Shown here in pieces: positions 19,392 to 64,000 of a DNA stretch of 64,000 nt. The position numbers and the translations under genes are program-made. The DNA is from Macrostomum lignano (lineage: Eukaryota). Position 1 is the stretch's first letter. The number at the start of each line of letters is the position of its first letter. The stretch is from NCBI GenBank assembly GCA_002269645.1, contig NIVC01000126.1:558001-622000 (forward strand), read 5' to 3'. The notes under the pieces were generated by a model. The model searched no databases. It was not told where the DNA came from and saw nothing but the letters and a program-made list of their open reading frames with translations.

Positions 19392-19664
19392 TTAGTGGTA
19401 CAGCTTGCACTGTAGAACTTCTTTGTCGGCGCATTCTCGAACTTTGTTAAAATAATAGAAACTCCCGTCGCGTCGTTCGAGCTTTTTAATAAAACCGGAG
19501 CCATTCCAGCGTTCTGGATCGCTTCCACGCACAGACCGGTACTCCTGGGCGTCCCGGTAGCCGGCCAGCTGGAACCGGTAGGCGTCCTCCACCTGTTCGC
19601 TCCAGGCCTTCGGTCGGACACAGGTGGCAGCTGTTGCTGCTCCATCGGCGGCTGCGGCGGCCAT
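19392..19664 (-). CDS. MEIG1: Meiosis-expressed gene 1 protein homolog, 90 aa, single coding exon
   Basis: [22 protein letters not shown]...RW...[27 protein letters not shown] matches the MEIG1 pattern [22 protein letters not shown]...[27 protein letters not shown]. The ATG at 19664 follows a TTTTTTCAG acceptor by 7 nt. Confidence 0.95.
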
Positions 19665-38300: not shown

Positions 38301-38694
38301 GAATCGAGCCTTGGCCGCCACCTGGTCATAGTGCTGAGGGTACAAGAGCACAATTCAATAGTTGCATTCGCCTGCACTACTCACTAGTAGGTCCAGTATT
38401 ATACCCACTCATTGCTTAACTTCATTGGCCTATATGCGGCCCTAAATTATATCTAACCAATCCCATGCCCCTCACTAGAGTCTGTACCAGTTGGACCATA
38501 AAACTGCTTGCCAAAGATTCACTGAAACAATGAGCAGCCTGCTGCACCGACTTGAGCCTCTGAACCCAGATATTGGCGCTTGTTGTTCAATTGGGGAAAT
38601 TCGATCGTTTAGGAGAATTTTCACACGGGTAAGCAATATACTTTACCATTTTGTGCAGTAATTATATGAGCTACCTCTGACAATGAGAGATTGT

Positions 38695-39383: not shown

Positions 39384-39962
39384 CAGGGGTCGGCAAACTG
39401 CGGCCCGCGGGTCACATGCGGCCCCTTGAAGCCTCTCTATCCGGCCCTCGGGTCCTCTGAAAGTTCACAATAGCAATCCGGACCGCTCAATGTTTGTGTC
39501 TTCTCTCAGCTCTATCCCTTCTCTCCTCTCTCCTCTCTCTCCCCTCTACTCTCTCCCCTCTCCTCTCCCCTCTACTCTCTCCCCTCTCCTCTCCCCTCTC
39601 TTCTCTCCCCTCTCCTCTCCCCTCTCTTCTCTCCCCTCTCCCTTCCCTCTACTCTCTCCCCTCTCCTCTCCCCTCTACTCTCTCCCCTCTCCTCTCCCCT
39701 CTACTCTCTCCCCTCTCCTCTCCCCTCTACTCTCTCCCCTCTCCTCTCCCCTCTCTTCTCTCCCCTCTCCTTTCCCCTCTCTTCTCTCCCCTCTACTCTC
39801 TCCCCCTCTCTCCCCTCTCCCCCTCTCCCTTCTCTTCCCACTCTCGTCTTCTCTCCTCTTCTCTCATTTATTCTCTCCCCTTTCCACTCTCATATTACCA
39901 GCAGCCATGTGCTGGATTTTTTTATCCGACCCTTGAGGTAAAAAAAGGATTGCCGACCCCTG
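39384..39962 (+). mobile_element. hAT/Charlie-like MITE with an internal CT-rich tract
   Basis: TIRs CAGGGGTCGGCAA ... TTGCCGACCCCTG. Copies lacking the left TIR start at 49201 and 58075. No clean TSD. Confidence 0.8.
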
Positions 39963-40784
39963 ACCTGCATGTTTTTCTATTAATGTTTACCCTCTAATCT
40001 GCTTTAAAACGTTACCTAGCTTCCTAAATGTCCTTATATTTACCTTACTAATTATTTAAATACTCTACCTACCTACCTAGTTACCTCCTGTCTACCCACA
40101 TAGTTATCTAACTACCAGAGTATCGAGTTACCTATCTATCTGACATACCTTGGTTACCTGGCTACTTTAGCTCGTACTAATCTATCTACCTAACTAATCT
40201 ACCTACCTATCTACTAATCTACCTATCAATCAATCTACGCACCCACAAATCTACCTACCTACCTACTAATTTACCTACCAATCAATCTATGTATATGTAC
40301 CAACTGATCTACCTACCTATCTTCCAATCCACCTACCAATCTATTTACCTACACTCAAGGGATCCACCTACCTACCTACCTGGTAGTTAATTTTTCTTTC
40401 TAACATTTCTTAATCCTCATCCATCAAATCCCGTCCCTTCGAGTCCCAGCTCCCTGTTCCCCATCATTAATGCTAATTAACCACTACTCCACTCGCATCC
40501 TTTCCCACCCCGCTGGTAGGCAGCGGGGGTCCCGGACTTTCTCTCCTCTCCCATTCTCACCCCTCCTCTCAAATCCTTCCTTTGTTTTCATAGCTTCATT
40601 TTTTGAGCCTATCTGCCTGTCTGTCTGTTTGCACAAGTGTCCTTTCCCATCCACTTTCCCCGCGGGTGACTGACACAAACTCACTCACGGGATTTCCATA
40701 GCTACACTGAGGAAAAAAGTATGCATATCTCCTATATCGACTCCCTTTCTACCGTGACAGGACTGGCTAGCCAAGAAGATCGGA

Positions 40785-43700
40785 ATGGTTGCTGCCCCCG
40801 TTGCTAGGCAGTTGCTATCCGTTGCAGCGGCAATTCTCATTGTCCAATTGTCCGCTGCATCCCCGACAACGGGTATTGCAGCTTCATCAACGAAAAGCCA
40901 TGGCTGCTCGGATGTATCTGGTAGAACTGCTCGTCTCAATTCAATGGTTTTAGCTAGCGAGTGTAAGTGCCTCTGAGTATTGGCTGCTTGTGTCTGAGAA
41001 TGTTCTCAATGTTTGTATTATGGACTCTGGAATGCTGTTTGAGTTCTATATGTTATTGCTTTTGGGAGCATTGATGTTCTTATACAGTTATCTGAAATCT
41101 TGCAATGCCAGGTGCTATGATGCTCATTCTAGATAGTCATTCTAGATGGCCACTCCAGATCGTCACTTCAGATGGTCACTCTACGAGTAGATGGTCACTC
41201 CAGATGGTCACTCCAGATGGTCACTCCAGATGGTCACTCCAGATGGTCACTCTAGATGGCCACTCCAGATGGTCACTCAAGTAGATGATCACTCCAGACA
41301 GTCACTCTAGTATCACTCCAGGTGGTCACAATAGATAGTCACACTAGATAGTTACTCAAGTAGATGGTGACTCGAGGTCGAGTAAATGATCACTCCAGAC
41401 AGTCACTCTAGTATCACTCCAGGTGGTCACAATAGATAGTCACACCAGATAGTTACTCAAGTAGATGGTGACTCGAGGTCGAGTAAATGATCACTCCAGA
41501 TCAGTCACTCCAGATCAATCACACCAAAGAGTCACTCCATCCGTTCCACCGTTAACTTTGTTCGCATTCGCAGATGTGGGCGGTTCCCTGATGCCCTACA
41601 CCAGAGCCACCGTGACCATAGACGGTGTGCCGGGACTGCACCAGGGCACAGGTCCAGAATTTGTCGGATCAACAGAGCAGCTGACTGGAGACAAAGCTGC
41701 AGGCTCCGATGCTTTCCCACTGTTACTGAATCTCTCGGGTCTGAGATGCCTGTGCACTTACAGTTCTGATGGAGCTTTTAGCAACTGTTCCGAGTAAGTA
41801 GCGAGATGAAGGGACAGAGATGAAGGGACAGGAGATGAAGGGACAAAGATAAAGGGACAAAGATGAAGGGACAAAGATAAAGGGACAAAGATGAAGGGAC
41901 AAAGATAAAGGGACAAAGATGAAGGGACAAAGATAAAGGGACAAAGATGAAGGGACAAAGATAAAGGGACAAAGATGAAGGGACAAAGATAAAGGGACAA
42001 AGATGAAGGGACAAAGATAAAGGGACAAAGATGAAGGGACAAAGATAAAGGGACAAAGATGAAGGGACAAAGATGAAGGGATAAAGATAAAGGGACAAAG
42101 ATGAAGGGACAAAGATAAAGGGACAAAGATAAAGGGACAAAGATGAAGGGACAAAGATGAAGGGACAAAGATAAAGGGACAAAGATGAAGGGACAAAGAT
42201 AAAGGGACAAAGATAAAGGGACAAAGATGAAGGGACAAAGATAAAGGGACAAAGATAAAGGGACAAAGATGAAGGGACAAAGATAAAGGGACAAAGATGA
42301 AGGGACAAAGATAAAGGGACAAAAATGAAGGGACAAAGATAAAGGGACAAAGATGAAGGGACAAAGATAAAGGGACAAAGATGAAGGGACAAAGATAAAG
42401 GGACAAAGATGAAGGGACAAAGATAAAGGGACAAAGATGAAGGGACAAAGATAAAGGGACAAAGATGAAGGGACAAAGATGAAGGGACAGGAGATGAAGG
42501 GACAAAGATAAAGGGACAAAGATAAAGGGACAAAGATAAAGGGACAAAGATGAAGGGACAAAGATAAAGGGACAAGAGAGGAAGGGACGAAGATAAAGGG
42601 ACAAAGATGAAGGGACAAAGATAAAGGGACAAAGATGAAGGGACAAAGATAAAGGGACAAAGATGAAGGGACAAAGATGAAGGGACAGGAGATGAAGGGA
42701 CAAAGATAAAGGGACAAAGATGAAGGGACAAAGATAAAGGGACAAAGATGAAGGGACAAAGATAAAGGGACAAGAGAGGAAGGGACAAAGATAAAGAGAC
42801 AGATAGGTGGGGACAGAGATGAAGGGACGAAATATAAAGGGACAAAGATAAAGGGACAAAGATAAAGGGACGAAAGATAATGAGACAAAAATGAAGGGAC
42901 AAAGATGAAGGGACGAAATATAAAGAGACAGATAGGTGGGGACAAAGATGAAGGGACGAAAGATATAGGGACAGAGATGAAGGCACAGAGATGAAGGGAC
43001 ATGCTTTAACTTGCAAGAAATTGGACGAACTAAATTGCAGTTTGTCAACTCCGGAACCGCCTTGGCCAGCCGCTGACAATTGTCAGTGGCATCTGACAAG
43101 CGGCGGTCAGCTAGTTGAAACTGACATCTCTAACCAAAATTTCACCTGCTTGGATCGGGCGACAACGTCCGTGAGCAATCCGGATCAGTTTTGGCCGAAA
43201 GTTTCGTCGGTCAACAATGATTTTGGATTCGACGACACTCTGTTTATAAAGTACAGCTACTCCGCTGTGCAGTGTAAGATCGTCAATGAGTCTGTTTTGC
43301 TTCTATATCGAGTCAGTAAGCTTGGAGATCTAGTGATTAGGGTTGGAGATCTAGTGATTAGGGTTGGAGATCTAGTCATTAGGGTTGGAGATCTAGTCAT
43401 TAGGGTTGGAGATCTAGTGATTAGGGTTGGAGATCTAGTGATTAGGGTTGGAGATCTAGTGATTAGGGTTGGAGATCTAGTCATTAGGGTTGGAGATCTA
43501 GTGATTAGGGTTGGAGATCTAGTCATTAGGGTTGGAGATCTAGTGATTAGGGTTGGAGATCTAGTCATTAGGGTTGGAGATCTAGTGATTAGGGTTGGAG
43601 ATCTAGTGATTAGGGTTGGAGATCTAGTCATTAGGGTTGGAGATTTAGTCATTAGGGTTGGAGATCTAGTCAGTAAGTTTGGAGATCTAGTCATTAAGGT

Positions 43701-46700
43701 TGGAGATCTAGTCATTAAGATCAGAGATCTAGTCATTAAGGTTGGAGATCTAGTCATTGGGGTTGGAGATCTAGTCAGTAAGTTTGGAGATCTAGTCAGT
43801 AAGCTTGGAGATCTAGTGATTAGGGTTGGAGATCTAGTCATTAGGGTTGGAGATCTAGTGATTAGGGTTGGAGATCTAGTCATTAGGGTTGGAGATCTAG
43901 TGATTAGGGTTGGAGATCTAGTGATTGGGGTTGGAGATCTAGTGATAGGGTTGGAGATCTAGTGATTAGGGTTGGAGATCTAGTCATTAGGGTTGGAGAT
44001 CTAGTGATTAGGGTTGGAGATCTAGTCATTAGGGTTGGAGATCTAGTGATTAGGGTTGGAGATCTAGTCATTAGGGTTGGAGATCTAGTGATTAGGGTTG
44101 GAGATCTAGTGATTAGGGTTGGAGATCTAGTCATTAGGGTTGGAGATTTAGTCATTAGGGTTGGAGATCTAGTCAGTAAGTTTGGAGATCTAGTCATTAA
44201 GGTTGGAGATCTAGTCATTAAGATCAGAGATCTAGTCATTAAGGTTGGAGATCTAGTCATTGGGGTTGGAGATCTAGTCAGTAAGTTTGGAGATCTAGTC
44301 ATTAAGATCAGAGATCTAGTCATTAAGGTTGGTGATCTAGTCATTGGGGTTGGAGATCTAGTCATTGGGGTTGGAGATCTAGTCATTGGGGTTGGAGATC
44401 TAGTCATTGGGGTTGGAGATCTAGTCATTGGGGTTGGAGATCTAGTCATTGGGGTTGGAGATCTAGTCATTGGGGTTGGAGATCTAGTCATTGGGGTTGG
44501 AGATCTAGTCATTAGGGTTAGAGATCTAGTCATTGGGGTTGGAGAACTAGTCATTAAGGTTGGAGATCTAGTCATTGGGGTTGGAGATCTAGTCATTAGG
44601 GTTAGAGATCTAGTCATTGGGGTTGGAGATCTAGTCATTGGGGTTGGAGAACTAGTCATTGGGGTTGGAGATCTAGTCATTGGGGTTGGAGATCTAGTCA
44701 TTGGGGTTGGAGATCTAGTCATTGGGGTTGGAGATCTAGTTAGTAAGAGCATAATTATTATATAATAAGTCTCATAAGTTATCTCCGGCATCAAGTAAGT
44801 GAACGAAGACAGCTTGTCAGTACTAGCAAAGATTAATATATTTATCATTCATATTTTTCTACAGACTTCAATGGCAGCCGTCATTTGGCATTCCTAGCCG
44901 ACGCTATCATCAATAGTCTATGGCCTGTCCGTATCAGCGTCCTGCGCCAACAGAGCGAAGGGGAGAGAGGCGGAAGCGGCGGCCAGGGGCGAGTGCTGAT
45001 CTATAGGAAATATTTTGGCTGGTCAGGGCACTGCCTACACGAGTGTCGGGCTGTGTACCGGGCGGGCTCCAGCTACCGGACTGTGGAGCAGAGTTGCACC
45101 GAGTAAGCGAAAGTGACAGATCGTGTGGAGAGAAGATGGCTGACAGATTAGAATTGAGTATAAGTGTGACAGATAGATTAGAAGTGAGAATAAGTGTGAC
45201 AGATAGATTAGAAGTGAGAATATTACGTGAAAGACAGGTTAGAAGTGAGAATATTACGTGAAAGACAGATTAGAGTGAGAATAAGTGTGACAGACAGATT
45301 AGAAGTGAGAATATTACGTGAAAGACAGATTAGAGTGAGAATAAGTGTGAAAGACAGATTAGGAGTGAGAATAAGTGTGACAGACAGATTAGGAGTGAGA
45401 ATAAGTGTGAAAGACAGATTAGGAGTGAGTATAAATGTGACAGATAGATTAGGAGTGAGAATAAGTGTGACAGACAGATTAGGAGTGAGAATAAGTGTGA
45501 AAGACAGATTAGAGTGAGAATAAGTGTGAAAGACAGATTAGGAGTGAGAATAAGTGTGACAGACAGATTAGGAGTGAGAATAAGTGTGACAGACATATTA
45601 GGAGTGAGAATAAGTGTGACAGACATATTAGGAGTGAGAATAAGTGTGACAGACAGATTAGGAGTGAGAATAAGTGTGAAAGACAGATTAGGAGTGAGAA
45701 TAAGTGTGACAGACAGATTAGAAGTGAGAATATTACGTGAAAGACAGATTAGAGTGAGAATAAGTGTGAAAGACAGATTAGGAGTGAGAATAAGTGTGAC
45801 AGACAGATTAGGAGTGAGAATAAGTGTGACAGACAGATTAGGAGTGAGAATAAGTGTGACAGACATATTAGGAGTGAGAATAAGTGTGACAGACAGATTA
45901 GGAGTGAGAATAAGTGTGACAGACAGATTAGAATTGAGAATAAGTGTGACAGACAGATTAGGAGTGAGTATAAATGTGACAGATAGATTAGGAGTGAGAA
46001 TAAGTGTGACAGACAGATTAGGAGTGAGAATAAGTGTGAAAGACAGATTAGGAGTGAGTATACGTGTGACAGACAGATTAGAAGTGAGAATAAGTGTGAA
46101 AGACAGATTAGGAGTGAGAATAAGTGTGACAGACAGATTAGGAGTGAGAATAAGTGTGACAGACATATTAGGAGTGAGAATAAGTGTGACAGACAGATTA
46201 GGAGTGAGAATAAGTGTGAAAGACAGATTAGGAGTGAGAATAAGTGTGACAGACAGATTAGGAGTGAGAATAAGTGTGACAGACAGATTAGAATTGAGAA
46301 TAAGTGTGACAGACAGATTAGGAGTGAGTATAAATGTGACAGATAGATTAGGAGTGAGAATAAGTGTGACAGACAGATTAGGAGTGAGAATAAGTGTGAA
46401 AGACAGATTAGGAGTGAGTATACGTGTGACAGACAGATTAGAAGTGAGAATAAGTGTGACAGACAGATTAGGAGTGAGAATAAGTGTGACAGAGAGATTA
46501 GGAGTGAGTATAAATGTGACAGATAGATTAGGAGTGAGAATAAGTGACAGGCAGATTGGGAGTAAGAACCGGCGTATGTATCTGATGCACATATTCACAG
46601 ACTTCAACAACTGACACCTGTCTAATTCAGGCTGGTCAGCGCTCAGACTGAAGCTCATACCGCATCTGAGTGCGTCTGGACATTCGCAGTGGACTGCAAG

Positions 46701-47620
46701 CCGGTGCTGGTGAGGGCTGACAATAGAAGCTTGGCCTGTACGAACCGGCAGAATAAAGAAGATGAGTCTACTGATTTAGCTGGGACCAGGTGAGTTCTGT
46801 GGGAGATGAGTGAGTGAAGGGGTGAGATTAGAGAAGGGAGAGGGGGATTAGAGAGGGGAGAGGGGTGAGATTAGAGAGGGGTGAGGGAGTGAGATTAGAG
46901 AAGGGAGAGGGATGGAAATTAGAGAAGGGAGCTCAGGGAGTGAGATTAGAGAAGGAGGACAAAGGGAGATCAGAGAAGGGAGAGGTAAGAGAGGGAGATT
47001 AGAGAAGGTAGAGGTGAGAGAGGGAGAGGTAAGAGAGGGAGATTAGAGAATGGAGAGGTGAGAAATTGAGATTAGAGAAGGAAGAGAGGAGAGAGATTAG
47101 AGAAGGGAGAGGTGAGAGAGGGAGATTAGAGAAGGGAGAGGTGAGAGAGGGAGATTAGAGAAGTGAGAGTTGAGAAGGGAGATTAGAGAAGTGAGAGGTG
47201 AGAGAGGGAGATTAGAAAACGGAGAGGTGAGAGAGGGAGATTAGACAGGAGAATGCACACCCTGCAGATTCTCAGAGAGCACATTGCACACTTCTTTCGT
47301 TAAACCGCAAATTCTCAAATTTAAAAACAAACTTCAGCCCTGCAAATCCTACAACTTCAACCGCGTACATGGAACCTGAGACTTCAACTGCGAGCATTGA
47401 GGCCACTGCTCACTGGCCAGACGACAATGTCACCGACTTTGTCACACCTTCACCGAGTTCTGATTGGTCGAACGAGACTCAATGCTACATTAAGCTGAGA
47501 CTTTTTGGCGGTGGAACAGCGCTGTCCCCAAACTTGCAGCTTCTTTTCATCAGCAAAATCTTAGTTGCCATGCTTGCTGTGTACGAATATAACTTGTTTA
47601 TTGATTTTGCTTTCATTTGA
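40785..47620 (+). CDS. Unrecognised secreted/GPI- or membrane-anchored Cys-rich glycoprotein, copy 1 (450 aa)
   Basis: Exons 40785-40962, 41574-41793, 43041-43315, 44865-45102, 46631-46789, 47338-47620 (1353 nt, all GT-AG, phases 1/2/1/2/2). Signal peptide MVAAPVARQLLSVAAAILIVQLSAA, 14 Cys, 8 N-glycosylation sequons, S/T/P-rich stalk, hydrophobic C-terminus. Confidence 0.85.
41145..41520. repeat. 13-bp GGTCACTCCAGAT repeat, intron 1 (also ~51040-51420, ~59920-60300, ~62890-63260)
   Basis: Period 13 (41221/41234), followed by longer degenerate units. Confidence 0.9.
41803..43000. repeat. 14-bp GAT(G/A)AAGGGACAAA minisatellite, intron 2 (1.2 kb here, ~0.35 kb in copies 2-4)
   Basis: Period 14 (41881/41895). 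Confidence 0.96.
43316..44745. repeat. 21-bp minisatellite containing TTAGGG (AGGGTTGGAGATCTAGTGATT), intron 3 (also ~52367-53925 and ~61240-61828)
   Basis: Period 21. The first unit overlaps the exon 3 donor. TTGGGG variants dominate the 3' half. Confidence 0.97.
45140..46550. repeat. 30-bp minisatellite (GTGAGAATAAGTGTGACAGACAGATTAGGA), intron 4 (also ~54320-55425)
   Basis: Period 30. Source of the VRISVTDRLG ORFs. Confidence 0.96.
46810..47250. repeat. GA-rich purine tract, intron 5 (also ~55685-56125)
   Basis: GAGATTAGAGAAGGGAGAGGT-like units. Confidence 0.88.
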
Positions 47621-48084
47621 GCACCTGGCCATTTCTAGGAAACTTTAACGTTGTGCGCAGTCTTTCATCCTGAAATACCATTGATTGAGGCTTCTCAAAA
47701 ATGTTATGATTGTGTAACATCGTAAAATATATTTAGTCTACAAGTGTTTTGGTGAAATTCCATATGCCCTAAAAACTGCTTCCCAAAAATTAGATCTGTT
47801 ACACCTATTTTTCCTGACTCGCTTAACTTTTCTCCGAATTTGAATCCATGCGAAAATTTGGAAAGTTTTAACTTTCGTTTAATTAAATAAACAAATAAAA
47901 CAAATAATTTAAATAATTAAATAAACAAACTGCGCAATTATTTGAATGTTTTTACAGTAAAATTTATCATTAATGATTTAAACAGACGAGCTACTATAAG
48001 TAGAAATAAACAAAAAACTTACTTTAGGTGCATTTTTAAAAGGTGCTCATTTTAGATGGTTTTCGATGATTCTGGCTAATGTCA

Positions 48085-48330
48085 GATGATGCCGGATGAT
48101 GCTGGGTGATGCTGGGTGATGCTGGATCATGACGGATGATGCCGGATGATGCTGGGTGATGCTGGATTATGACGGATGATGCTGGGTGATGCCGGATGAT
48201 GCTTCGTGATGCTGGATGATGCCGGATGATGCTGGGTGATGCCGGATAATGCTGGGTGATGCCAGATGATGCTGGTTGATGCTGAATGATGCTGTGTAAT
48301 GCTGAATGATGCTGGGTGATGCTGGGTGAT
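48085..48330. repeat. 10-bp TGATGCTGGG repeat (also ~56960-57205)
   Basis: Period 10. Confidence 0.88.
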
Positions 48331-48789
48331 GCTAGATAATCTGATATTTAAAGAAAACATCTGGTTCATTATATGATGCAATAAAAGCTACGCTTGAGAA
48401 CTGGAGGCTAAAAGAATAAATATTTTTTATGCCCTATTTTTCGAAAATTGTTGACAAGCCAGGTAATAAGTTTTTTTCGTACTATTATCTTCCTTGAACT
48501 TGAGCTGGAAAAGGTCAACATATTCGTGTCACTGCTCCATCAAAATCGTGCTCAAGAGGTGAGCACAAAAGCTAGGAACACTCCAAGCTAGGTTAGTTGA
48601 AACCGTATTGAGTGCATTTTGTTGTTTTATGGGCCGAGCATTTCTATAAAAACCGCCTACGCTGGTAGGCTGACCTTTGAGCTGGACTTTCGCGCGAATG
48701 CTTTCAGTCAAGTGCTTCAGAATGCTTCAGGCATGAAGGGTCAAGTTTAGGAAAAAGTTATTTCTATTGGCTGTTGCTGAGGGGATGCC

Positions 48790-49187
48790 CTTTGGGGGCG
48801 CTTTGGGTGGCGCCTTGGGTAGCGCTTTTAGTGGCGCTCTGGGGGCGCTTTTAGTGGCGCTTTGGGTGGCGCTTTGGGTGGCGCTTTAGGTGGCCCCTTG
48901 TGGGTGCTTTTGTGGTGCTTTGGGTGGCGCTTTGGGTGGCGCTCTGGGGGGGGGCGCTTTGGGGGGCGCTTTGGGTGGCGCTTTGGGTGACGCTTTGGGT
49001 GGCGCTCTGGGGGGCGCTTTGGGTGGCGCTTTGGGTGACGCTTTGGATGGCGCTCTGGGGGGGCGCTTTGGGTGGCGCTTTGGGTGACGCTTTGGGTGGC
49101 GCTCTGGGGGGCACTTTGGGTGGCGCTCTGGGGGGCGCTTTGGGTGGCGCTTTGGGGGGCGCTTTGGGTGGCGCTTTGGGTGGAGCC
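48790..49187. repeat. 12-bp GGCGCTTTGGGT G-rich array (also ~57665-58061)
   Basis: Repeated GGCGCTTTGGG(T/G) units ending GGTGGAGCC. Confidence 0.9.
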
Positions 49188-50678
49188 CAAAGACTGACTC
49201 CGGCCCGCGGGTCACATGCGGCCCCTTGAAGCCTCTCTATCCGGCCGTCGTGTCCTCTGAAAGTTCACAATAGCCATCCAGACCGCTCAATGTTTGTGTC
49301 TTTTCTCAGCTCCATCCCTTCTCTCCTTTCTCCTCTCTCTCCAATCTACTCTCTCCCCTCCCCTCTACTCTCTCCCCTCTCCTCTTCCCTCTCTTCTCTC
49401 ACCTCTCTTCTCTCTCCTCTCTCCACCCTCTCCACTCCACTCTCTCCCCTCTCCCCTCTCTCCCCTCTCTCCCCTCTTCCCTTTCTCCCTTCTCTTCTTT
49501 TTCTCTCGTCTTCTCTTCTCTTCTCTCATTTATTCTCTCTCCTTTCCACTCTCATATTACCAGCAGCCATGAGCTGGATTTTTTATCCGCCCCTTGAGGT
49601 AAAAAAGTTTGCCGACCCCTGACCTACACGTTTGTCTATTAATTTTTACTTTCTAATCTGCTTTAAAACATACCTAGCTTCCTAACTATCTTTATATTTA
49701 CCTTACTAATTAATTTAATACTCTACCTACCTACCTAGTTACGAGAGTACCTCCTGTCTACCCACATAATTATCTAACTATCAGAGTATCGAGTTACCTA
49801 TCTATCTGAAATGCCTTGGTTACATGGCTACCTTAAAAATCTATCTACCTAATCTGCTTAAATATCTAACCAACAATCTGACCTCACTACTTGCTTACTT
49901 TCCCACCTAACTAATCTAGTAAAAACCCACCTACGTACCTAGTTTATACCTAAACCTAACAATCCACCAAAAGCCTACCTAGTATATCTACAAATCTACC
50001 TACCTATCAGCTAATCTAGCTAAAAATGTACCTACCTACCAACCAAAATATCTACCTAACTACCTACTCATCTATTTACGTACCTACTAATCTACCTACC
50101 TATCTACCAATCTACGTACCAATCAATCTACGCACCCACTAATCTACCTACCTATCTACCAATCTACCTAATAATCTATCTACCTACATGTACCTACTAA
50201 TCTACCTATCTTCCAATCCACCTACCAATCCAATCTATTTACCTACACTCAAGGGATCCACCTACCTACCTACCTGGTAGTTAATTTTTCTTTCTAACAT
50301 TTCTTAATCCTCATCCATCAAATCCCGTCCCTTCGAGTCCCAGCTCCCTGTTCCCCATCATTAATGCTAATTAACCACTACTCCACTCGCATCCTTTCCC
50401 ACCCCGCTGGTAGGCAGCGGGGGTCCCGGACTTTCTCTCCTCTCCCATTCTCACCCCTCCTCTCAAATCCTTCCTTTGTTTTCATAGCTTCATTTTTTGA
50501 GCCTATCTGCCTGTCTGTCTGTTTGCACAAGTGTCCTTTCCCATCCACTTTCCCCGCGGGTGACTGACACAAACTCACTCACGGGATTTCCATAGCTACA
50601 CTGAGGAAAAAAGTATGCATATCTCCTATATCGACTCCCTTTCTACCGTGACAGGACTGGCTAGCCAAGAAGATCGGA

Positions 50679-53600: not shown

Positions 53601-56495
53601 GTCATTGGGGTTGGAGATCTAGTCATTGGGGTTGGAGATCTAGTCATTGGGGTTGGAGATCTAGTCATTGGGGTTGGAGATCTAGTCATTAGGGTTAGAG
53701 ATCTAGTCATTGGGGTTGGAGAACTAGTCATTAAGGTTGGAGATCTAGTCATTGGGGTTGGAGATCTAGTCATTAGGGTTAGAGATCTAGTCATTGGGGT
53801 TGGAGATCTAGTCATTGGGGTTGGAGAACTAGTCATTGGGGTTGGAGATCTAGTCATTGGGGTTGGAGATCTAGTCATTGGGGTTGGAGATCTAGTCATT
53901 GGGGTTGGAGATCTAGTTAGTAAGAGCATAATTATTATATAATAAGTCTCATAAGTTATCTCCGGCATCAAGTAAGTGAACGAAGACAGCTTGTCAGTAC
54001 TAGCAAAGATTAATATATTTATCATTCATATTTTTCTACAGACTTCAATGGCAGCCGTCATTTGGCATTCCTAGCCGACGCTATCATCAATAGTCTATGG
54101 CCTGTCCGTATCAGCGTCCTGCGCCAACAGAGCGAAGGGGAGAGAGGCGGAAGCGGCGGCCAGGGGCGAGTGCTGATCTATAGGAAATATTTTGGCTGGT
54201 CAGGGCACTGCCTACACGAGTGTCGGGCTGTGTACCGGGCGGGCTCCAGCTACCGGACTGTGGAGCAGAGTTGCACCGAGTAAGCGAAAGTGACAGATCG
54301 TGTGGAGAGAAGATGGAATTGATTAGAATTGAGTATAAGTGTGACAGATAGATTAGAAGTGAGAATAAGTGTGACAGATAGATTAGAAGTGAGAATATTA
54401 CGTGAAAGACAGGTTAGAAGTGAGAATATTACGTGAAAGACAGATTAGAGTGAGAATAAGTGTGACAGACAGATTAGAAGTGAGAATATTACGTGAAAGA
54501 CAGATTAGAGTGAGAATAAGTGTGAAAGACAGATTAGGAGTGAGAATAAGTGTGACAGACAGATTAGGAGTGAGAATAAGTGTGACAGACAGATTAGGAG
54601 TGAGTATAAATGTGACAGATAGATTAGGAGTGAGAATAAGTGTGACAGACAGATTAGGAGTGAGAATAAGTGTGAAAGACAGATTAGAGTGAGAATAAGT
54701 GTGAAAGACAGATTAGGAGTGAGAATAAGTGTGACAGACAGATTAGGAGTGAGAATAAGTGTGACAGACATATTAGGAGTGAGAATAAGTGTGACAGACA
54801 TATTAGGAGTGAGAATAAGTGTGACAGACAGATTAGGAGTGAGAATAAGTGTGAAAGACAGATTAGGAGTGAGAATAAGTGTGACAGACAGATTAGAAGT
54901 GAGAATATTACGTGAAAGACAGATTAGAGTGAGAATAAGTGTGAAAGACAGATTAGGAGTGAGAATAAGTGTGACAGACAGATTAGGAGTGAGAATAAGT
55001 GTGACAGACATATTAGGAGTGAGAATAAGTGTGACAGACAGATTAGGAGTGAGAATAAGTGTGAAAGACAGATTAGGAGTGAGAATAAGTGTGACAGACA
55101 GATTAGGAGTGAGAATAAGTGTGACAGACAGATTAGAATTGAGAATAAGTGTGACAGACAGATTAGGAGTGAGTATAAATGTGACAGATAGATTAGGAGT
55201 GAGAATAAGTGTGACAGACAGATTAGGAGTGAGAATAAGTGTGAAAGACAGATTAGGAGTGAGTATACGTGTGACAGACAGATTAGAAGTGAGAATAAGT
55301 GTGACAGACAGATTAGGAGTGAGAATAAGTGTGACAGAGAGATTAGGAGTGAGTATAAATGTGACAGATAGATTAGGAGTGAGAATAAGTGTGACAGACA
55401 GATTAGGAGTGAGAATAAGTGACAGGCAGATTGGGAGTAAGAACCGGCGTATGTATCTGATGCACATATTCACAGACTTCAACAACTGACACCTGTCTAA
55501 TTCAGGCTGGTCAGCGCTCAGACTGAAGCTCATACCGCATCTGAGTGCGTCTGGACATTCGCAGTGGACTGCAAGCCGGTGCTGGTGAGGGCTGACAATA
55601 GAAGCTTGGCCTGTACGAACCGGCAGAATAAAGAAGATGAGTCTACTGATTTAGCTGGGACCAGGTGAGTTCTGTGGGAGATGAGTGAGTGAAGGGGTGA
55701 GATTAGAGAAGGGAGAGGGGGATTAGAGAGGGGAGAGGGGTGAGATTAGAGAGGGGTGAGGGAGTGAGATTAGAGAAGGGAGAGGGATGGAAATTAGAGA
55801 AGGGAGCTCAGGGAGTGAGATTAGAGAAGGAGGACAAAGGGAGATCAGAGAAGGGAGAGGTAAGAGAGGGAGATTAGAGAAGGTAGAGGTGAGAGAGGGA
55901 GAGGTAAGAGAGGGAGATTAGAGAATGGAGAGGTGAGAAATTGAGATTAGAGAAGGAAGAGAGGAGAGAGATTAGAGAAGGGAGAGGTGAGAGAGGGAGA
56001 TTAGAGAAGGGAGAGGTGAGAGAGGGAGATTAGAGAAGTGAGAGTTGAGAAGGGAGATTAGAGAAGTGAGAGGTGAGAGAGGGAGATTAGAAAACGGAGA
56101 GGTGAGAGAGGGAGATTAGACAGGAGAATGCACACCCTGCAGATTCTCAGAGAGCACATTGCACACTTCTTTCGTTAAACCGCAAATTCTCAAATTTAAA
56201 AACAAACTTCAGCCCTGCAAATCCTACAACTTCAACCGCGTACATGGAACCTGAGACTTCAACTGCGAGCATTGAGGCCACTGCTCACTGGCCAGACGAC
56301 AATGTCACCGACTTTGTCACACCTTCACCGAGTTCTGATTGGTCGAACGAGACTCAATGCTACATTAAGCTGAGACTTTTTGGCGGTGGAACAGCGCTGT
56401 CCCCAAACTTGCAGCTTCTTTTCATCAGCAAAATCTTAGTTGCCATGCTTGCTGTGTACGAATATAACTTGTTTATTGATTTTGCTTTCATTTGA
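50679..56495 (+). CDS. Cys-rich surface glycoprotein, copy 2 (complete, 450 aa)
   Basis: Exons 50679-50856, 51482-51701, 52092-52366, 54042-54279, 55506-55664, 56213-56495. Differs from copy 1 in exon 2 (A->D, P->L, N->Y). Confidence 0.85.
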
Positions 56496-59400
56496 GCACC
56501 TGGCCATTTCTAGGAAACTTTAACGTTGTGCGCAGTCTTTCATCCTGAAATACCATTGATTGAGGCTTCTCAAAAATGTTATGATTGTGTAACATCGTAA
56601 AATATATTTAGTCTACAAGTGTTTTGGTGAAATTCCATATGCCCTAAAAACTGCTTCCCAAAAATTAGATCTGTTACACCTATTTTTCCTGACTCGCTTA
56701 ACTTTTCTCCGAATTTGAATCCATGCGAAAATTTGGAAAGTTTTAACTTTCGTTTAATTAAATAAACAAATAAAACAAATAATTTAAATAATTAAATAAA
56801 CAAACTGCGCAATTATTTGAATGTTTTTACAGTAAAATTTATCATTAATGATTTAAACAGACGAGCTACTATAAGTAGAAATAAACAAAAAACTTACTTT
56901 AGGTGCATTTTTAAAAGGTGCTCATTTTAGATGGTTTTCGATGATTCTGGCTAATGTCAGATGATGCCGGATGATGCTGGGTGATGCTGGGTGATGCTGG
57001 ATCATGACGGATGATGCCGGATGATGCTGGGTGATGCTGGATTATGACGGATGATGCTGGGTGATGCCGGATGATGCTTCGTGATGCTGGATGATGCCGG
57101 ATGATGCTGGGTGATGCCGGATAATGCTGGGTGATGCCAGATGATGCTGGTTGATGCTGAATGATGCTGTGTAATGCTGAATGATGCTGGGTGATGCTGG
57201 GTGATGCTAGATAATCTGATATTTAAAGAAAACATCTGGTTCATTATATGATGCAATAAAAGCTACGCTTGAGAACTGGAGGCTAAAAGAATAAATATTT
57301 TTTATGCCCTATTTTTCGAAAATTGTTGACAAGCCAGGTAATAAGTTTTTTTCGTACTATTATCTTCCTTGAACTTGAGCTGGAAAAGGTCAACATATTC
57401 GTGTCACTGCTCCATCAAAATCGTGCTCAAGAGGTGAGCACAAAAGCTAGGAACACTCCAAGCTAGGTTAGTTGAAACCGTATTGAGTGCATTTTGTTGT
57501 TTTATGGGCCGAGCATTTCTATAAAAACCGCCTACGCTGGTAGGCTGACCTTTGAGCTGGACTTTCGCGCGAATGCTTTCAGTCAAGTGCTTCAGAATGC
57601 TTCAGGCATGAAGGGTCAAGTTTAGGAAAAAGTTATTTCTATTGGCTGTTGCTGAGGGGATGCCCTTTGGGGGCGCTTTGGGTGGCGCCTTGGGTAGCGC
57701 TTTTAGTGGCGCTCTGGGGGGCGCTTTTAGTGGCGCTTTGGGTGGCGCTTTGGGTGGCGCTTTAGGTGGCCCCTTGTGGGTGCTTTTGTGGTGCTTTGGG
57801 TGGCGCTTTGGGTGGCGCTCTGGGGGGGGGGCGCTTTGGGGGGCGCTTTGGGTGGCGCTTTGGGTGACGCTTTGGGTGGCGCTCTGGGGGGCGCTTTGGG
57901 TGGCGCTTTGGGTGACGCTTTGGATGGCGCTCTGGGGGGCGCTTTGGGTGGCGCTTTGGGTGACGCTTTGGGTGGCGCTCTGGGGGCACTTTGGGTGGCG
58001 CTCTGGGGGCGCTTTGGGTGGCGCTTTGGGGGGCGCTTTGGGTGGCGCTTTGGGTGGAGCCCAAAGACTGACTCCGGCCCGCGGGTCACATGCGGCCCCT
58101 TGAAGCCTCTCTATCCGGCCGTCGTGTCCTCTGAAAGTTCACAATAGCCATCCAGACCGCTCAATGTTTGTGTCTTTTCTCAGCTCCATCCCTTCTCTCC
58201 TTTCTCCTCTCTCTCCAATCTACTCTCTCCCCTCCCCTCTACTCTCTCCCCTCTCCTCTTCCCTCTCTTCTCTCACCTCTCTTCTCTCTCCTCTCTCCAC
58301 CCTCTCCACTCCACTCTCTCCCCTCTCCCCTCTCTCCCCTCTCTCCCCTCTTCCCTTTCTCCCTTCTCTTCTTTTTCTCTCGTCTTCTCTTCTCTTCTCT
58401 CATTTATTCTCTCTCCTTTCCACTCTCATATTACCAGCAGCCATGAGCTGGATTTTTTATCCGCCCCTTGAGGTAAAAAAGTTTGCCGACCCCTGACCTA
58501 CACGTTTGTCTATTAATTTTTACTTTCTAATCTGCTTTAAAACATACCTAGCTTCCTAACTATCTTTATATTTACCTTACTAATTAATTTAATACTCTAC
58601 CTACCTACCTAGTTACGAGAGTACCTCCTGTCTACCCACATAATTATCTAACTATCAGAGTATCGAGTTACCTATCTATCTGAAATGCCTTGGTTACATG
58701 GCTACCTTAAAAATCTATCTACCTAATCTGCTTAAATATCTAACCAACAATCTGACCTCACTACTTGCTTACTTTCCCACCTAACTAATCTAGTAAAAAC
58801 CCACCTACGTACCTAGTTTATACCTAAACCTAACAATCCACCAAAAGCCTACCTAGTATATCTACAAATCTACCTACCTATCAGCTAATCTAGCTAAAAA
58901 TGTACCTACCTACCAACCAAAATATCTACCTAACTACCTACTCATCTATTTACGTACCTACTAATCTACCTACCTATCTACCAATCTACGTACCAATCAA
59001 TCTACGCACCCACTAATCTACCTACCTATCTACCAATCTACCTAATAATCTATCTACCTACATGTACCTACTAATCTACCTATCTTCCAATCCACCTACC
59101 AATCCAATCTATTTACCTACACTCAAGGGATCCACCTACCTACCTACCTGGTAGTTAATTTTTCTTTCTAACATTTCTTAATCCTCATCCATCAAATCCC
59201 GTCCCTTCGAGTCCCAGCTCCCTGTTCCCATCATTAATGCTAATTAACCACTACTCCACTCGCATCCTTTCCCACCCCGCTGGTAGGCAGCGGGGGTCCC
59301 GGACTTTCTCTCCTCTCCCATTCTCACCCCTCCTCTCAAATCCTTCCTTTGTTTTCATAGCTTCATTTTTTGAGCCTATCTGCCTGTCTGTCTGTTTGCA

Positions 59401-59551
59401 CAAGTGTCCTTTCCCATCCACTTTCCCCGCGGGTGACTGACACAAACTCACTCACGGGATTTCCATAGCTACACTGAGGAAAAAAGTATGCATATCTCCT
59501 ATATCGACTCCCTTTCTACCGTGACAGGACTGGCTAGCCAAGAAGATCGGA

Positions 59552-61239
59552 ATGGTTGCTGCCCCCGTTGCTAGGCAGTTGCTATCCGTTGCAGCGGCAA
59601 TTCTCATTGTCCAATTGTCCGCTGCATCCCCGACAACGGGTATTGCAGCTTCATCAACGAAAAGCCATGGCTGCTCGGATGTATCTGGTAGAACTGCTCG
59701 TCTCAATTCAATGGTTTTAGCTAGCGAGTGTAAGTGCCTCTGAGTATTGGCTGCTTGTGTCTGAGAATGTTCTCAATGTTTGTATTATGGACTCTGGAAT
59801 GCTGTTTGAGTTCTATATGTTATTGCTTTTGGGAGCATTGATGTTCTTATACAGTTATCTGAAATCTTGCAATGCCAGGTGCTATGATGCTCATTCTAGA
59901 TAGTCATTCTAGATGGCCACTCCAGATCGTCACTTCAGATGGTCACTCTACGAGTAGATGGTCACTCCAGATGGTCACTCCAGATGGTCACTCCAGATGG
60001 TCACTCCAGATGGTCACTCCAGATGGTCACTCTAGATGGCCACTCCAGATGGTCACTCAAGTAGATGATCACTCCAGACAGTCACTCTAGTATCACTCCA
60101 GGTGGTCACAATAGATAGTCACACTAGATAGTTACTCAAGTAGATGGTGACTCGAGGTCGAGTAAATGATCACTCCAGACAGTCACTCTAGTATCACTCC
60201 AGGTGGTCACAATAGATAGTCACACCAGATAGTTACTCAAGTAGATGGTGACTCGAGGTCGAGCAAATGATCACTCCAGATCAGTCACTCCAGATCAATC
60301 ACACCAAAGAGTCACTCCATCCGTTCCACCGTTAACTTTTGTTCGCATTCGCAGATGTGGGCGGTTCCCTGATGCCCTACACCAGAGCCACCGTGACCAT
60401 AGACGGTGTGCCGGGACTGCACCAGGGCACAGGTCCAGAATTTGTCGGATCAACAGAGCAGCTGACTGGAGACAAAGCTGCAGGCTCCGATGATTTCCTA
60501 CTGTTATTGAATCTCTCGGGTCTGAGATGCCTGTGCACTTACAGTTCTGATGGAGCTTTTAGCTACTGTTCCGAGTAAGTAGCGAGATGAAGGGACAGAG
60601 ATGAAGGGACAGGAGATGAAGGGACAAAGATAAAGGGACAAAGATGAAGGGACAAAGATAAAGGGACAAAGATGAAGGGACAAAGATAAAGGGACAAGAG
60701 AGGAAGGGACAAAGATAAAGAGACAGATAGGTGGGGACAGAGATGAAGGGACGAAATATAAAGGGACAAAGATAAAGGGACAAAGATAAAGGGACGAAAG
60801 ATAATGAGACAAAAATGAAGGGACAAAGATGAAGGGACGAAATATAAAGAGACAGATAGGTGGGGACAAAGATGAAGGGACGAAAGATATAGGGACAGAG
60901 ATGAAGGCACAGAGATGAAGGGACATGCTTTAACTTGCAAGAAATTGGACGAACTAAATTGCAGTTTGTCAACTCCGGAACCGCCTTGGCCAGCCGCTGA
61001 CAATTGTCAGTGGCATCTGACAAGCGGCGGTCAGCTAGTTGAAACTGACATCTCTAACCAAAATTTCACCTGCTTGGATCGGGCGACAACGTCCGTGAGC
61101 AATCCGGATCAGTTTTGGCCGAAAGTTTCGTCGGTCAACAATGATTTTGGATTCGACGACACTCTGTTTATAAAGTACAGCTACTCCGCTGTGCAGTGTA
61201 AGATCGTCAATGAGTCTGTTTTGCTTCTATATCGAGTCA
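59552..61239 (+). CDS. Cys-rich surface glycoprotein, copy 3 (exons 1-3 only, cut by the nested duplication)
   Basis: Exons 59552-59729, 60355-60574, 60965-61239. Intron 3 is interrupted at ~61828 by a jump back to upstream sequence. Confidence 0.75.
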
Positions 61240-62520
61240 GTAAGCTTGGAGATCTAGTGATTAGGGTTGGAGATCTAGTGATTAGGGTTGGAGATCTAGT
61301 CATTAGGGTTGGAGATCTAGTGATTAGGGTTGGAGATCTAGTGATTAGGGTTGGAGATCTAGTGATTAGGGTTGGAGATCTAGTCATTAGGGTTGGAGAT
61401 CTAGTGATTAGGGTTGGAGATCTAGTCATTAGGGTTGGAGATCTAGTCATTAGGGTTGGAGATCTAGTGATTAGGGTTGGAGATCTAGTGATTAGGGTTG
61501 GAGATCTAGTGATTAGGGTTGGAGATCTAGTCATTAGGGTTGGAGATCTAGTGATTAGGGTTGGAGATCTAGTCATTAGGGTTGGAGATCTAGTGATTAG
61601 GGTTGGAGATCTAGTTATTAGGGTTGGAGATCTAGTGATTAGGGTTGGAGATCTAGTGATTAGGGTTGGAGATCTAGTCATTAGGGTTGGAGATTTAGTC
61701 ATTAGGGTTGGAGATCTAGTCATTAGGGTTGGAGATCTAGTGATTAGGGTTGGAGATCTAGTCATTAGGGTTGGAGATCTAGTGATTAGGGTTGGAGATC
61801 TAGTTATTAGGGTTGGAGATCTAGTGATTACCTACCTATACCTACCTATCAGCTAATCTAGCTAAAAATGTACCTACCTACCAACCAAAATATCTACCTA
61901 ACTACCTACTCATCTATTTACGTACCTACTAATCTACCTACCTATCTACCAATCTACGTACCAATCAATCTACGCACCCACTAATCTACCTACCTATCTA
62001 CCAATCTACCTAATAATCTATCTACCTACATGTACCTACTAATCTACCTATCTTCCAATCCACCTACCAATCCAATCTATTTACCTACACTCAAGGGATC
62101 CACCTACCTACCTACCTGGTAGTTAATTTTTCTTTCTAACATTTCTTAATCCTCATCCATCAAATCCCGTCCCTTCGAGTCCCAGCTCCCTGTTCCCCAT
62201 CATTAATGCTAATTAACCACTACTCCACTCGCATCCTTTCCCACCCCGCTGGTAGGCAGCGGGGGTCCCGGACTTTCTCTCCTCTCCCATTCTCACCCCT
62301 CCTCTCAAATCCTTCCTTTGTTTTCATAGCTTCATTTTTTGAGCCTATCTGCCTGTCTGTCTGTTTGCACAAGTGTCCTTTCCCATCCACTTTCCCCGCG
62401 GGTGACTGACACAAACTCACTCACGGGATTTCCATAGCTACACTGAGGAAAAAAGTATGCATATCTCCTATATCGACTCCCTTTCTACCGTGACAGGACT
62501 GGCTAGCCAAGAAGATCGGA

Positions 62521-64000
62521 ATGGTTGCTGCCCCCGTTGCTAGGCAGTTGCTATCCGTTGCAGCGGCAATTCTCATTGTCCAATTGTCCGCTGCATCCCC
62601 GACAACGGGTATTGCAGCTTCATCAACGAAAAGCCATGGCTGCTCGGATGTATCTGGTAGAACTGCTCGTCTCAATTCAATGGTTTTAGCTAGCGAGTGT
62701 AAGTGCCTCTGAGTATTGGCTGCTTGTGTCTGAGAATGTTCTCAATGTTTGTATTATGGACTCTGGAATGCTGTTTGAGTTCTATATGTTATTGCTTTTG
62801 GGAGCATTGATGTTCTTATACAGTTATCTGAAATCTTGCAATGCCAGGTGCTATGATGCTCATTCTAGATAGTCATTCTAGATGGCCACTCCAGATCGTC
62901 ACTTCAGATGGTCACTCTACGAGTAGATGGTCACTCCAGATGGTCACTCCAGATGGTCACTCCAGATGGTCACTCCAGATGGTCACTCCAGATGGTCACT
63001 CTAGATGGCCACTCCAGATGGTCACTCAAGTAGATGATCACTCCAGACAGTCACTCTAGTATCACTCCAGGTGGTCACAATAGATAGTCACACTAGATAG
63101 TTACTCAAGTAGATGGTGACTCGAGGTCGAGTAAATGATCACTCCAGACAGTCACTCTAGTATCACTCCAGGTGGTCACAATAGATAGTCACACCAGATA
63201 GTTACTCAAGTAGATGGTGACTCGAGGTCGAGCAAATGATCACTCCAGATCAGTCACTCCAGATCAATCACACCAAAGAGTCACTCCATCCGTTCCACCG
63301 TTAACTTTTGTTCGCATTCGCAGATGTGGGCGGTTCCCTGATGCCCTACACCAGAGCCACCGTGACCATAGACGGTGTGCCGGGACTGCACCAGGGCACA
63401 GGTCCAGAATTTGTCGGATCAACAGAGCAGCTGACTGGAGACAAAGCTGCAGGCTCCGATGATTTCCTACTGTTATTGAATCTCTCGGGTCTGAGATGCC
63501 TGTGCACTTACAGTTCTGATGGAGCTTTTAGCTACTGTTCCGAGTAAGTAGCGAGATGAAGGGACAGAGATGAAGGGACAGGAGATGAAGGGACAAAGAT
63601 AAAGGGACAAAGATGAAGGGACAAAGATAAAGGGACAAAGATGAAGGGACAAAGATAAAGGGACAAGAGAGGAAGGGACAAAGATAAAGAGACAGATAGG
63701 TGGGGACAGAGATGAAGGGACGAAATATAAAGGGACAAAGATAAAGGGACAAAGATAAAGGGACGAAAGATAATGAGACAAAAATGAAGGGACAAAGATG
63801 AAGGGACGAAATATAAAGAGACAGATAGGTGGGGACAAAGATGAAGGGACGAAAGATATAGGGACAGAGATGAAGGCACAGAGATGAAGGGACATGCTTT
63901 AACTTGCAAGAAATTGGACGAACTAAATTGCAGTTTGTCAACTCCGGAACCGCCTTGGCCAGCCGCTGACAATTGTCAGTGGCATCTGACAAGCGGCGGT
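62521..64000 (+). CDS. Cys-rich surface glycoprotein, copy 4 (exons 1-2 and start of exon 3; runs off the window)
   Basis: Exons 62521-62698, 63324-63543, 63934->end. Confidence 0.78.

Follow-up and report, generated by a model that had tools for sequence, protein, structure and literature searches.

A head-to-tail array of near-identical gene copies in Macrostomum lignano, encoding a lineage-restricted and probable surface glycoprotein

Gene-bearing macrosatellites, such as human D4Z4/DUX4 and CT47, are multi-kb tandem arrays with a gene in each unit. The locus described here resembles them in having a unit of about 9 kb that holds a complete gene and is repeated head to tail in nearly identical copies, but differs in that only three to four units are visible within the window (the whole 64,000-nucleotide stretch analyzed, positions 558,001 to 622,000 of contig NIVC01000126.1), one of them truncated. 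At the protein level, two described systems come closest. GPI-anchored glycoproteins on a mucin-like stalk have the same succession of signal peptide, folded Cys-containing ectodomain, Ser/Thr/Pro stalk, omega residues and hydrophobic C-terminus, although anchoring is only predicted for the window protein and its ectodomain has no sequence relationship to those of characterized GPI proteins. The CUB domain (PF00431 / PS01180), known from cubilin, procollagen C-endopeptidase enhancer and the neuropilins, is likewise extracellular. The nearest relatives of the gene itself are two homeologs, BOX15_Mlig016975g2 (PAA93624.1) and BOX15_Mlig014724g1 (PAA58531.1), which have the same six-coding-exon structure, splice sites and protein architecture, coding exons 92-100% identical to those of the window gene, and upstream carboxylesterase-family DNA or gene in common with it.

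Self-BLAST resolved positions 39397-64000 into a head-to-tail array on one strand, with a unit of 8.9-9.8 kb; the window contains two complete copies (A and B) and two partial ones (C and D), and the far end of the array lies beyond it. Both self-BLAST and exon mapping bear out an earlier note on this DNA, which had described at least four copies (two complete) of a 6-exon gene over 39401-64000. With copies of the complete gene following one another head to tail on one strand, the locus is a tandem gene array. Its features are as follows:

38539-38628, + strand: 5′ leader (or untranslated) exon of the annotated copy A transcript
39397-49196, + strand: repeat unit A, 9.8 kb, bearing gene copy A
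40785-47620, + strand: gene copy A, coding part, 436 aa, stop included
40785-40962, 41574-41793, 43041-43273, 44865-45102, 46631-46789 and 47338-47620, + strand: exons of copy A
43307-44740: intronic 21-mer minisatellite in intron 3 of copy A, 68 copies (TRF)
49197-58070, + strand: repeat unit B, 8.87 kb
50679-56495, + strand: gene copy B, complete, 436 aa
50679-50856, 51482-51701, 52092-52324, 54042-54279, 55506-55664 and 56213-56495, + strand: exons of copy B
58071-61830, + strand: repeat unit C, truncated, stopping within the 21-mer satellite of intron 3
59552-59729, 60355-60574 and 60965-61197, + strand: exons 1-3 of copy C
61839-64000, + strand: repeat unit D, restarting at the equivalent of 58871 and running past the window end
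62521-62698 and 63324-63543, + strand: exons 1-2 of copy D, with exon 3 starting at 63934 and cut by the window end

Outside the satellites the units are 99.8-100% identical, the first 2.4 kb of A excepted. Over 3161 nt, the head of unit C shows one mismatch and one indel against B (99.94% identity), while unit D is 99.95% identical to B and likewise to C, from which it is separated by 1 indel in 2162 nt. The tails of A and B are 99.8% identical and differ by 5 single-base indels only; their heads are 86-97% identical. Every intron, as well as the 3′ flank, carries its own satellite array, made up of 13-, 14-, 21-, 30-, 29/57-, 10- or 12-mers (TRF), and most of the difference between units arises because the copy numbers of these arrays differ. 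Thus, the 14-mer array has 85 copies in A vs. 24 in B, and the 21-mer array of intron 3 has 68 in A, 74 in B (52358-53917) and 28 in C. At the C/D junction, the 21-mer satellite gives way suddenly to (CCTA)n-like low-complexity DNA. No coding-exon difference separates B, C and D, whereas A departs from them at 4 nt, every one in exon 2; the affected stretches read DAFP and SNCS in A but DDFL and SYCS in B-D. We read the region as a very recent tandem duplication, real yet fairly ordinary.

Window positions 28539-57620 (locus L002) are 100% identical over 29 kb to the Macrostomum lignano assembly Mlig_3_7, contig NIVC01000126.1. Copy A is GenBank PAA90150.1, "hypothetical protein BOX15_Mlig016975g1", and its translation equals the deposited protein (P0004) from the Met onward; copy B matches UniProt A0A1I8I7H7 (P0006) across that entry's 371 aa and is without GenBank annotation. 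At the level of sequence, the locus can thus no longer be called undescribed, as had been supposed, its sequence being part of a published, annotated genome. GT-AG borders are found at all six coding exons in both A and B, and the ATG-bearing exon of copy A begins at acceptor 40761. The GenBank splice pattern, which is the same for all three homeologs, yields 436 aa, 13 Cys and 6 NxS/T sequons, and its exon 3/4 junction is also supported by a divergent paralog (P0012). An in-frame alternative donor of exon 3, located 42 nt downstream, yields 450 aa, 14 Cys and 7 sequons; its use accounts for the 450 aa and 14 Cys of the earlier note, which had counted 8 sequons and whose figures the GenBank splice sites do not reproduce. 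A first splice model of our own (492 aa, with longer exons 3 and 6) was dropped on comparison with the deposited proteins.

An exhaustive phmmer search of 1.84 billion representatives returned 6 hits, all of them M. lignano UniProt entries, and a word-indexed profile search returned 8, again all from M. lignano. Across these representatives and 5.8 billion clusters, the family is found only in M. lignano and appears lineage-restricted, in agreement with what had been proposed. Only about 4 distinct loci are known, and one paralog (P0012) stands at 42% identity. UniProt A0A1I8IBR2, known only as a 219-aa fragment and only 42% identical, shares with the window protein the conserved core PPWPA..C.WHLT ... 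LWPVR ... YFGWS..CLHEC. The homeologous loci L001 and L003 each have a single copy within ±10 kb, compared to the 3-4 tandem units seen here, and each has carboxylesterase-family DNA or gene upstream. The coding exons are 97.7-100% identical to those of L001 vs. about 90-94% for flanks and introns, and dN/dS is below 1 between paralogs or homeologs, consistent with constraint on the coding sequence.

The translated sequence has the N-terminal signal peptide, the S/T/P stalk and the GGG ahead of a hydrophobic C-terminus that had been noted before. Residues 1-25 include Arg8, the hydrophobic stretch LLSVAAAILIVQL and then a small-residue SAAS site, and Kyte-Doolittle windows exceed 1.4 in this segment, so that by inspection it has the makings of a signal peptide. 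A Ser/Thr/Pro-rich stretch covers approximately residues 335-390. At the C-terminus, GGG (399-401) precedes a 35-residue tail, in which the spacer TALSPNLQ leads into the hydrophobic LLFISKILVAMLAVY...FAFI. This tail contains K415 (its one Lys), an Asp and a Glu, and neither Lys nor Arg comes after its hydrophobic core. By pattern, small omega residues, spacer and hydrophobic tail are those of a GPI C-terminal signal, and the tail looks like one. Thirty-five residues after GGG is rather long for such a signal. Conceivable, though on the whole unlikely, is a secreted product or one that crosses the membrane once in type I orientation: LQLLFISKILVAMLAVY has the length needed for a membrane span, and 11 further residues lie beyond it. 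However, these contain no basic residue, only Glu and Asp, and the protein ends within a hydrophobic region with three consecutive Gly placed 8 residues ahead of the hydrophobic segment, in what is the classic GPI arrangement. Judging from sequence features, the product is probably a membrane-anchored glycoprotein of the secretory pathway, which lends support to the earlier suggestion of a cell-surface or secreted protein.

No domain had been recognized in the ectodomain before, and this still holds for Pfam and PDB sequence searches. Pfam-A hmmscan gave no hit at E≤10 for any of six family members, the CUB model included, and nothing for the 492-aa splice model; a sequence search of the PDB and a family-profile search were equally negative, and none of these searches yielded a strong match to a known family. 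The statement is only partly right, however, because the family profile scored against CUB above all shuffled controls, even though at low probability. Aligned by hhalign with 8 real CUB domains taken from PDB hits, it scored 23.9-26.0 (probability 5.8-11.6%) over CUB columns 6-107, a score reached by 0/150 column shuffles (mean 13.1, max 22.9), with a reversed control at 15.2. The alignment pairs PPWPaadnCqWHLT with the CUB motif 'YPxxxxCxW' and LFIKYSYS with the 'l.i.F.sD' strand, and places C147 at CUB C2 (the CxW motif), with C131 and C169 as possible C1 and C3. The two thus have in common a 'P..P....C.W.L' motif with alternating hydrophobic strands after it, aligned along almost all of the CUB domain, but differ in the lack of a Pfam match, in an hhalign probability of only 6-12% and in the absence of a recognizable C3-C4 disulfide pair, the C4 position having no Cys and the next Cys being C267. 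With this weak signal, the ectodomain probably includes a single degenerate module of CUB type, around residues 125-225. AlphaFold2 models from alignments of 6-7 sequences predicted mostly beta strands, with mean pLDDT (29.1 and 34.3) too poor to use. Comparison of the exon-encoded segments with one another gave no signal of internal domain repeats (best pair z=2.1, a score reached by 8/200 shuffles).

The automatic names given by UniProt are inconsistent across the family (CUB, Ricin B-type lectin, Dirigent). Several members are called 'CUB domain-containing protein', presumably on the basis of a signature other than that of Pfam. Ricin B-type lectin, the name of three N-terminal fragments, was rejected: it has no Pfam match at E≤10, there are no internal repeats, and the N-terminal part has no QxW motif because no Trp occurs before residue 141.

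The explanation we favor, as moderately probable, is a very recent head-to-tail duplication at one of the three homeologous loci of the hidden-polyploid M. lignano, involving a gene (Mlig016975) that encodes a probable surface glycoprotein and belongs to a family found only in this species. Its product would begin with a signal peptide, followed by an ectodomain of about 300 aa that is rich in beta structure and holds 12 cysteines; after a mucin-like Ser/Thr/Pro linker would come GGG, a short spacer and the hydrophobic tail. Once in the ER pathway, the protein would receive N-glycans on up to 6 sequons and O-glycans along its stalk, and a GPI anchor would replace its C-terminal peptide; displayed on the cell surface, it may then engage a partner, either protein or glycan, through the CUB-like module. 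For the origin of the array, unequal recombination between the satellite-rich flanks, or replication slippage there, is the most likely route, and the near-identity of its copies would reflect concerted evolution or sheer youth.

Some of the same observations might be read in other ways. The earlier note proposed diversifying selection, as in a rapidly diversifying recognition or immune-type gene family, and a lineage-restricted family with a 42%-identical paralog and a fairly high dN/dS among homeologs (0.44-0.94) has something of this character. We consider it very improbable, since coding exons identical between copies bar four bases leave no diversification to explain; moreover, dN/dS exceeds 1 in none of the pairwise comparisons, the nonsynonymous changes are few (3-34 per pair), and so few loci of the family are known. 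A better case can be made for assembly inflation: some or all of the additional copies, and most of all the cut-short unit C and the point where D restarts, would be false duplications of a true locus with 1 or 2 copies. Inflation is conceivable because B, C and D are so alike (0-1 mismatch per 2-3 kb, plus single-base indels), and the exclusively single-base indels between the A and B tails and the abrupt C/D junction point in the same direction; this junction may be an assembly error. The inflation would stem from assembling noisy long reads of a genome that is rich in repeats and partly aneuploid, an origin that we rate as rather unlikely. In Mlig_3_7, duplicated non-repetitive blocks (≥95% identity) are reported to total 180 Mb; the assembly is stated to be highly redundant, and the sequenced line to bear extra chromosomes (PMC5730564). 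On the other hand, the differences between A and B are unlike those of an echo. The four exon substitutions, the diverged heads and the very different satellite lengths, notably of the 14-mer array, make the two distinguishable, so that at least the A/B duplication is no trivial product of assembly. In addition, the tandem order is supported by a UniProt gene model (P0013), probably built on the older ML2 assembly, in which exon 6 runs on into exons 1-2 of the following copy. As we read the discussion in PMC5730564, ML2 and Mlig_3_7 share PacBio data, and the independence of this support would be partial. Overall, we think it rather unlikely that the extra copies are false.

Whether the downstream copies are used is a separate question. 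The N-terminal extension of PAA90150.1 maps at 100% to the leader exon at 38539-38628, which is followed by the donor GTAAGC. The window has a single instance of this exon, 770 nt ahead of the start of the repeated unit, which does not include it; it also lies outside the interval given in the earlier note. In both L001 and L003 it is kept at 84-93% identity. The annotated leader exon and its upstream region thus belong to copy A only, which makes a dosage effect of the array doubtful. Taken further, copies B-D might be dead-on-arrival duplicates, with only A normally transcribed and the array of no consequence for dosage. This is a reading we take seriously without preferring it: neither the leader exon nor the promoter that precedes it is part of the duplicated unit, and copy A alone is annotated by GenBank within the 29 kb checked. 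However, all copies retain intact reading frames and splice sites and have the same 3′ acceptor, 24 nt ahead of the ATG, which could be joined to the one leader exon or, by trans-splicing, to a spliced leader; the latter process serves 38.8% of M. lignano genes (PMC5730564). The GenBank submission also left out transcripts overlapping repeat annotations (PMC5730564), and this exclusion could hide copy B. No expression or functional data on Mlig016975 or Mlig014724 were found in the M. lignano papers and supplements. We regard as improbable the further possibility that the ectodomain is a new Macrostomum-specific fold, centered on the conserved block at residues 226-335 (LWPVR...YFGWS..CLHEC...ECVWTF), and the array a small gene-bearing macrosatellite whose downstream copies, lacking promoters of their own, are expressed either off the one leader exon ahead of the array or through trans-splicing of a spliced leader onto a read-through transcript. 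Were it true, the dosage of a surface protein would depend on copy number.

If the favored explanation of a recent duplication is correct, one homeologous locus out of three has amplified a gene that is confined to this lineage and likely encodes a surface glycoprotein, a result of little import beyond the species. Should the copies be real and expressed, the locus could be a modest natural system for studying gene dosage and concerted evolution in young tandem duplicates; should they be artefacts, it would usefully illustrate how an assembly rich in repeats can gain genes falsely. M. lignano can be made transgenic. For the Mlig_3_7 annotation, the locus raises three issues, namely that the complete copy B is unannotated, that copy A is marked 'partial' and that the C/D junction is suspicious. 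Downstream of the homeolog Mlig016975g2, at L001, lies an IP3-receptor-type gene; the exons of the IP3-receptor gene in the loci examined are very short and satellite-ridden.

From position 39397 to its end, the window consists of a direct head-to-tail repeat with a unit size of 8.9-9.8 kb, comprising four units, A to D, that carry copies A to D of a gene:

39397-49196, unit A
49197-58070, unit B
58071-61830, unit C, ending abruptly within a 21-mer satellite
61839-64000, unit D, restarting at the equivalent of position 58871 and continuing past the window end

The tandem copies proposed in an earlier note, made by a model from the sequence alone, are borne out, and the observation is well above chance. 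Satellites aside, the units are nearly identical: the heads of B and C differ by 1 mismatch and 1 indel over 3161 nt, C and D by 1 indel over 2162 nt, and the tails of A and B by 5 single-base indels over 2630 nt. Between A and B, the exon-4 region is 100% identical and the first 2.4 kb 86-97% identical. Satellite copy number varies by unit (the intron-2 14-mer, for example, has 85 copies in A vs. 24 in B). At the C/D junction (61830/61839), the 21-mer satellite passes directly into (CCTA)n-like DNA at the equivalent of position 58871; either a mis-join in the assembly or a genuine deletion derivative could account for this.

Stop-free segments and splice signals define six coding exons on the + strand, with splice sites set by the GenBank pattern of deposited M. 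lignano proteins. In this pattern all introns are GT-AG and copies A and B encode 436 aa each; copy C keeps exons 1-3, and copy D exons 1-2 and the beginning of exon 3. The coding exons are 100% identical across copies, save that copy A has four substitutions in its exon 2. The 450 aa and 14 Cys of the earlier note were reproduced with an in-frame alternative exon-3 donor 42 nt downstream, but not with the GenBank pattern, and its 8 N-glycosylation sequons fell to 7 even in the 450-aa model and to 6 in the 436-aa protein. Both the three GenBank models and P0012 (UniProt A0A1I8IBR2), a divergent paralog, favour the shorter exon-3 form.

At the sequence level the gene is not undescribed, contrary to what had been supposed: copy A is already deposited as GenBank PAA90150.1 ("hypothetical protein BOX15_Mlig016975g1, partial"). 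The window's own locus is contig NIVC01000126.1 of GCA_002269645.1 (Mlig_3_7), with 29,082 nt at 100% identity to window 28539-57620. Copy B is complete and has no gene call in the GenBank contig record; its product matches UniProt A0A1I8I7H7. Several UniProt models of the family (P0009-P0011, P0013 and P0014) are frameshifted or chimeric predictions, one of which fuses the last exon with the next copy's first exons. We read the array as a young tandem duplicate of a hypothetical gene that was already deposited, within a genome known to be redundant and rich in repeats.

Could part of this array be an assembly artefact? Speaking for this are the near-complete identity of units B, C and D, a C/D junction that shifts abruptly inside low-complexity DNA, and the known redundancy of the Mlig_3_7 assembly. 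However, two observations favour a real duplication of at least A and B: exon 2, the heads and the satellites all differ between them, and UniProt model P0013, which we take to be derived from the earlier ML2 assembly, continues past exon 6 into the following copy's exons 1-2. We consider a partial artefact unlikely, though a serious contender, and retain the tandem duplication as our reading.

M. lignano has been described as a hidden polyploid (PMC5704211), and the same gene is found at homeologous loci on two further contigs: L001 (NIVC01000023.1, Mlig016975g2), lying downstream of a carboxylesterase-family gene and upstream of an IP3-receptor-type gene, and L003 (NIVC01002364.1, Mlig014724g1), with a large unannotated gene downstream. 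At both, the gene's exons occur once each within +/-10 kb, and the amplification is therefore specific to the window locus. Judged by sequence identity, the duplication is much younger than the homeolog split (at least 99.8% between units, ~90-94% in homeolog flanks). Window and L001 exons are 97.7-100% identical, with a synonymous divergence of 1.3-1.6%, several-fold below that of flanks and introns (~6-10%), which suggests either nucleotide-level constraint or gene conversion between homeologous exons. The earlier proposal of diversifying selection does not fit the near-identity of the coding exons or a dN/dS of 0.44-0.94, itself derived from very few substitutions; these values fit a gene under constraint, possibly with homogenisation through gene conversion.

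The family's lineage specificity was supported. Only two matches came from 5.8 billion protein clusters, six from 1.84 billion representatives searched exhaustively with phmmer, and eight from a profile search, all of them M. lignano proteins; A0A1I8IBR2 (a 219-aa fragment) was the sole divergent relative among them, at 42% identity. Six family members had no Pfam match at E<=10, and the family profile had none in the PDB. Automatic UniProt names conflict (CUB, Ricin B-type lectin, Dirigent). The Ricin B-type lectin label found no support: Pfam gave no match, internal repeats were not detected, and Trp is absent before residue 141. Against a reference alignment of eight real CUB domains from PDB matches, hhalign placed family residues ~125-223 on CUB columns 6-107 with a score of 24-26 and a probability of only 6-12%; PPWPaadnCqWHLT falls on the 'YP....C.W.I' motif and LFIKYSYS on the 'l.i.F.sD' strand. 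None of 150 column-shuffled alignments matched this score (mean 13.1, SD 2.6, maximum 22.9); reversing the alignment gave 15.2. The fourth CUB cysteine is missing, and AlphaFold2 reached a pLDDT of 29 and 34 in two runs from shallow alignments. A degenerate CUB-like module is a plausible, if tentative, assignment; the conserved block at residues 226-335 received none.

Of the architecture previously outlined, the Cys and sequon counts did not stand; the six exons, signal-peptide-like start, Ser/Thr/Pro stretch and GGG with hydrophobic tail did. Within residues 1-25, Arg8 is followed by a hydrophobic core and then an SAAS site; 12 Cys are present in the mature protein, with C392 replaced by Ser in two homeologs; and Ser/Thr/Pro make up 40-45% of residues ~335-390. 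The GGG (399-401) is followed by a spacer, TALSPNLQ, and the hydrophobic tail, with no basic residue beyond the tail core. This matches the classic GPI-attachment signal pattern; a single-pass anchor whose tail is 11 residues long is a possible alternative. The gene product is best read as a cell-surface protein that is glycosylated and probably GPI-anchored, with a putative CUB-like module that would bind an extracellular partner. The M. lignano papers and supplements searched make no mention of Mlig016975 or Mlig014724.

The annotated copy A transcript opens with a leader exon (38539-38628), whose splice acceptor lies 24 nt ahead of the ATG. This exon occurs once in the window, external to the repeat unit, and is conserved at both homeologous loci. 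Copies B-D keep the identical acceptor and lack a leader exon of their own, making their transcription uncertain and, with it, the idea of selection for dosage, which requires it, unsupported. In principle, they could be served by spliced-leader trans-splicing or by the one leader exon acting as a shared splice donor; trans-splicing is reported for 38.8% of genes (PMC5730564).

The entire window is eukaryotic DNA exceptionally rich in minisatellites, with an array of its own in every intron of the repeated gene. Other arrays include:

4759-5783, 18-mer, 57 copies
7584-9694, 31-mer, 66 copies
10956-16067 (5.1 kb), 29-mer, 176 copies
33580-34535, 52-mer, 18 copies

This load agrees with the reported share of 15% simple and tandem repeats in Mlig_3_7, an assembly described as highly redundant (PMC5730564). 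The intron-3 21-mer satellite (52003-53136; also at ~43 kb in unit A) is stop-free for >1 kb in the exon-3 frame, reading (GDLVIRV)n, and intron retention would yield a product with a long heptad-repeat tail. The open frame is probably a mere by-product of a stop-free unit of length divisible by three.

Three other genes or ORFs were seen in the window:

19392-19718, - strand, single-exon 108-aa ORF matching Pfam Meiosis_expr (MEIG1-like; E=3e-33)
~25648-30631, + strand, multi-exon gene of the carboxylesterase family (Pfam COesterase), with a 710-aa product in GenBank, interrupted by satellites
33008-33451, + strand, 147-aa ORF, a probable gene for mitochondrial ribosomal protein L32 (Ribosomal_L32p match with E=5e-5, above the Pfam cut-off)

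Because of a C-terminal transmembrane-like segment, the carboxylesterase-family product has the appearance of a neuroligin/cholinesterase-like adhesion molecule.
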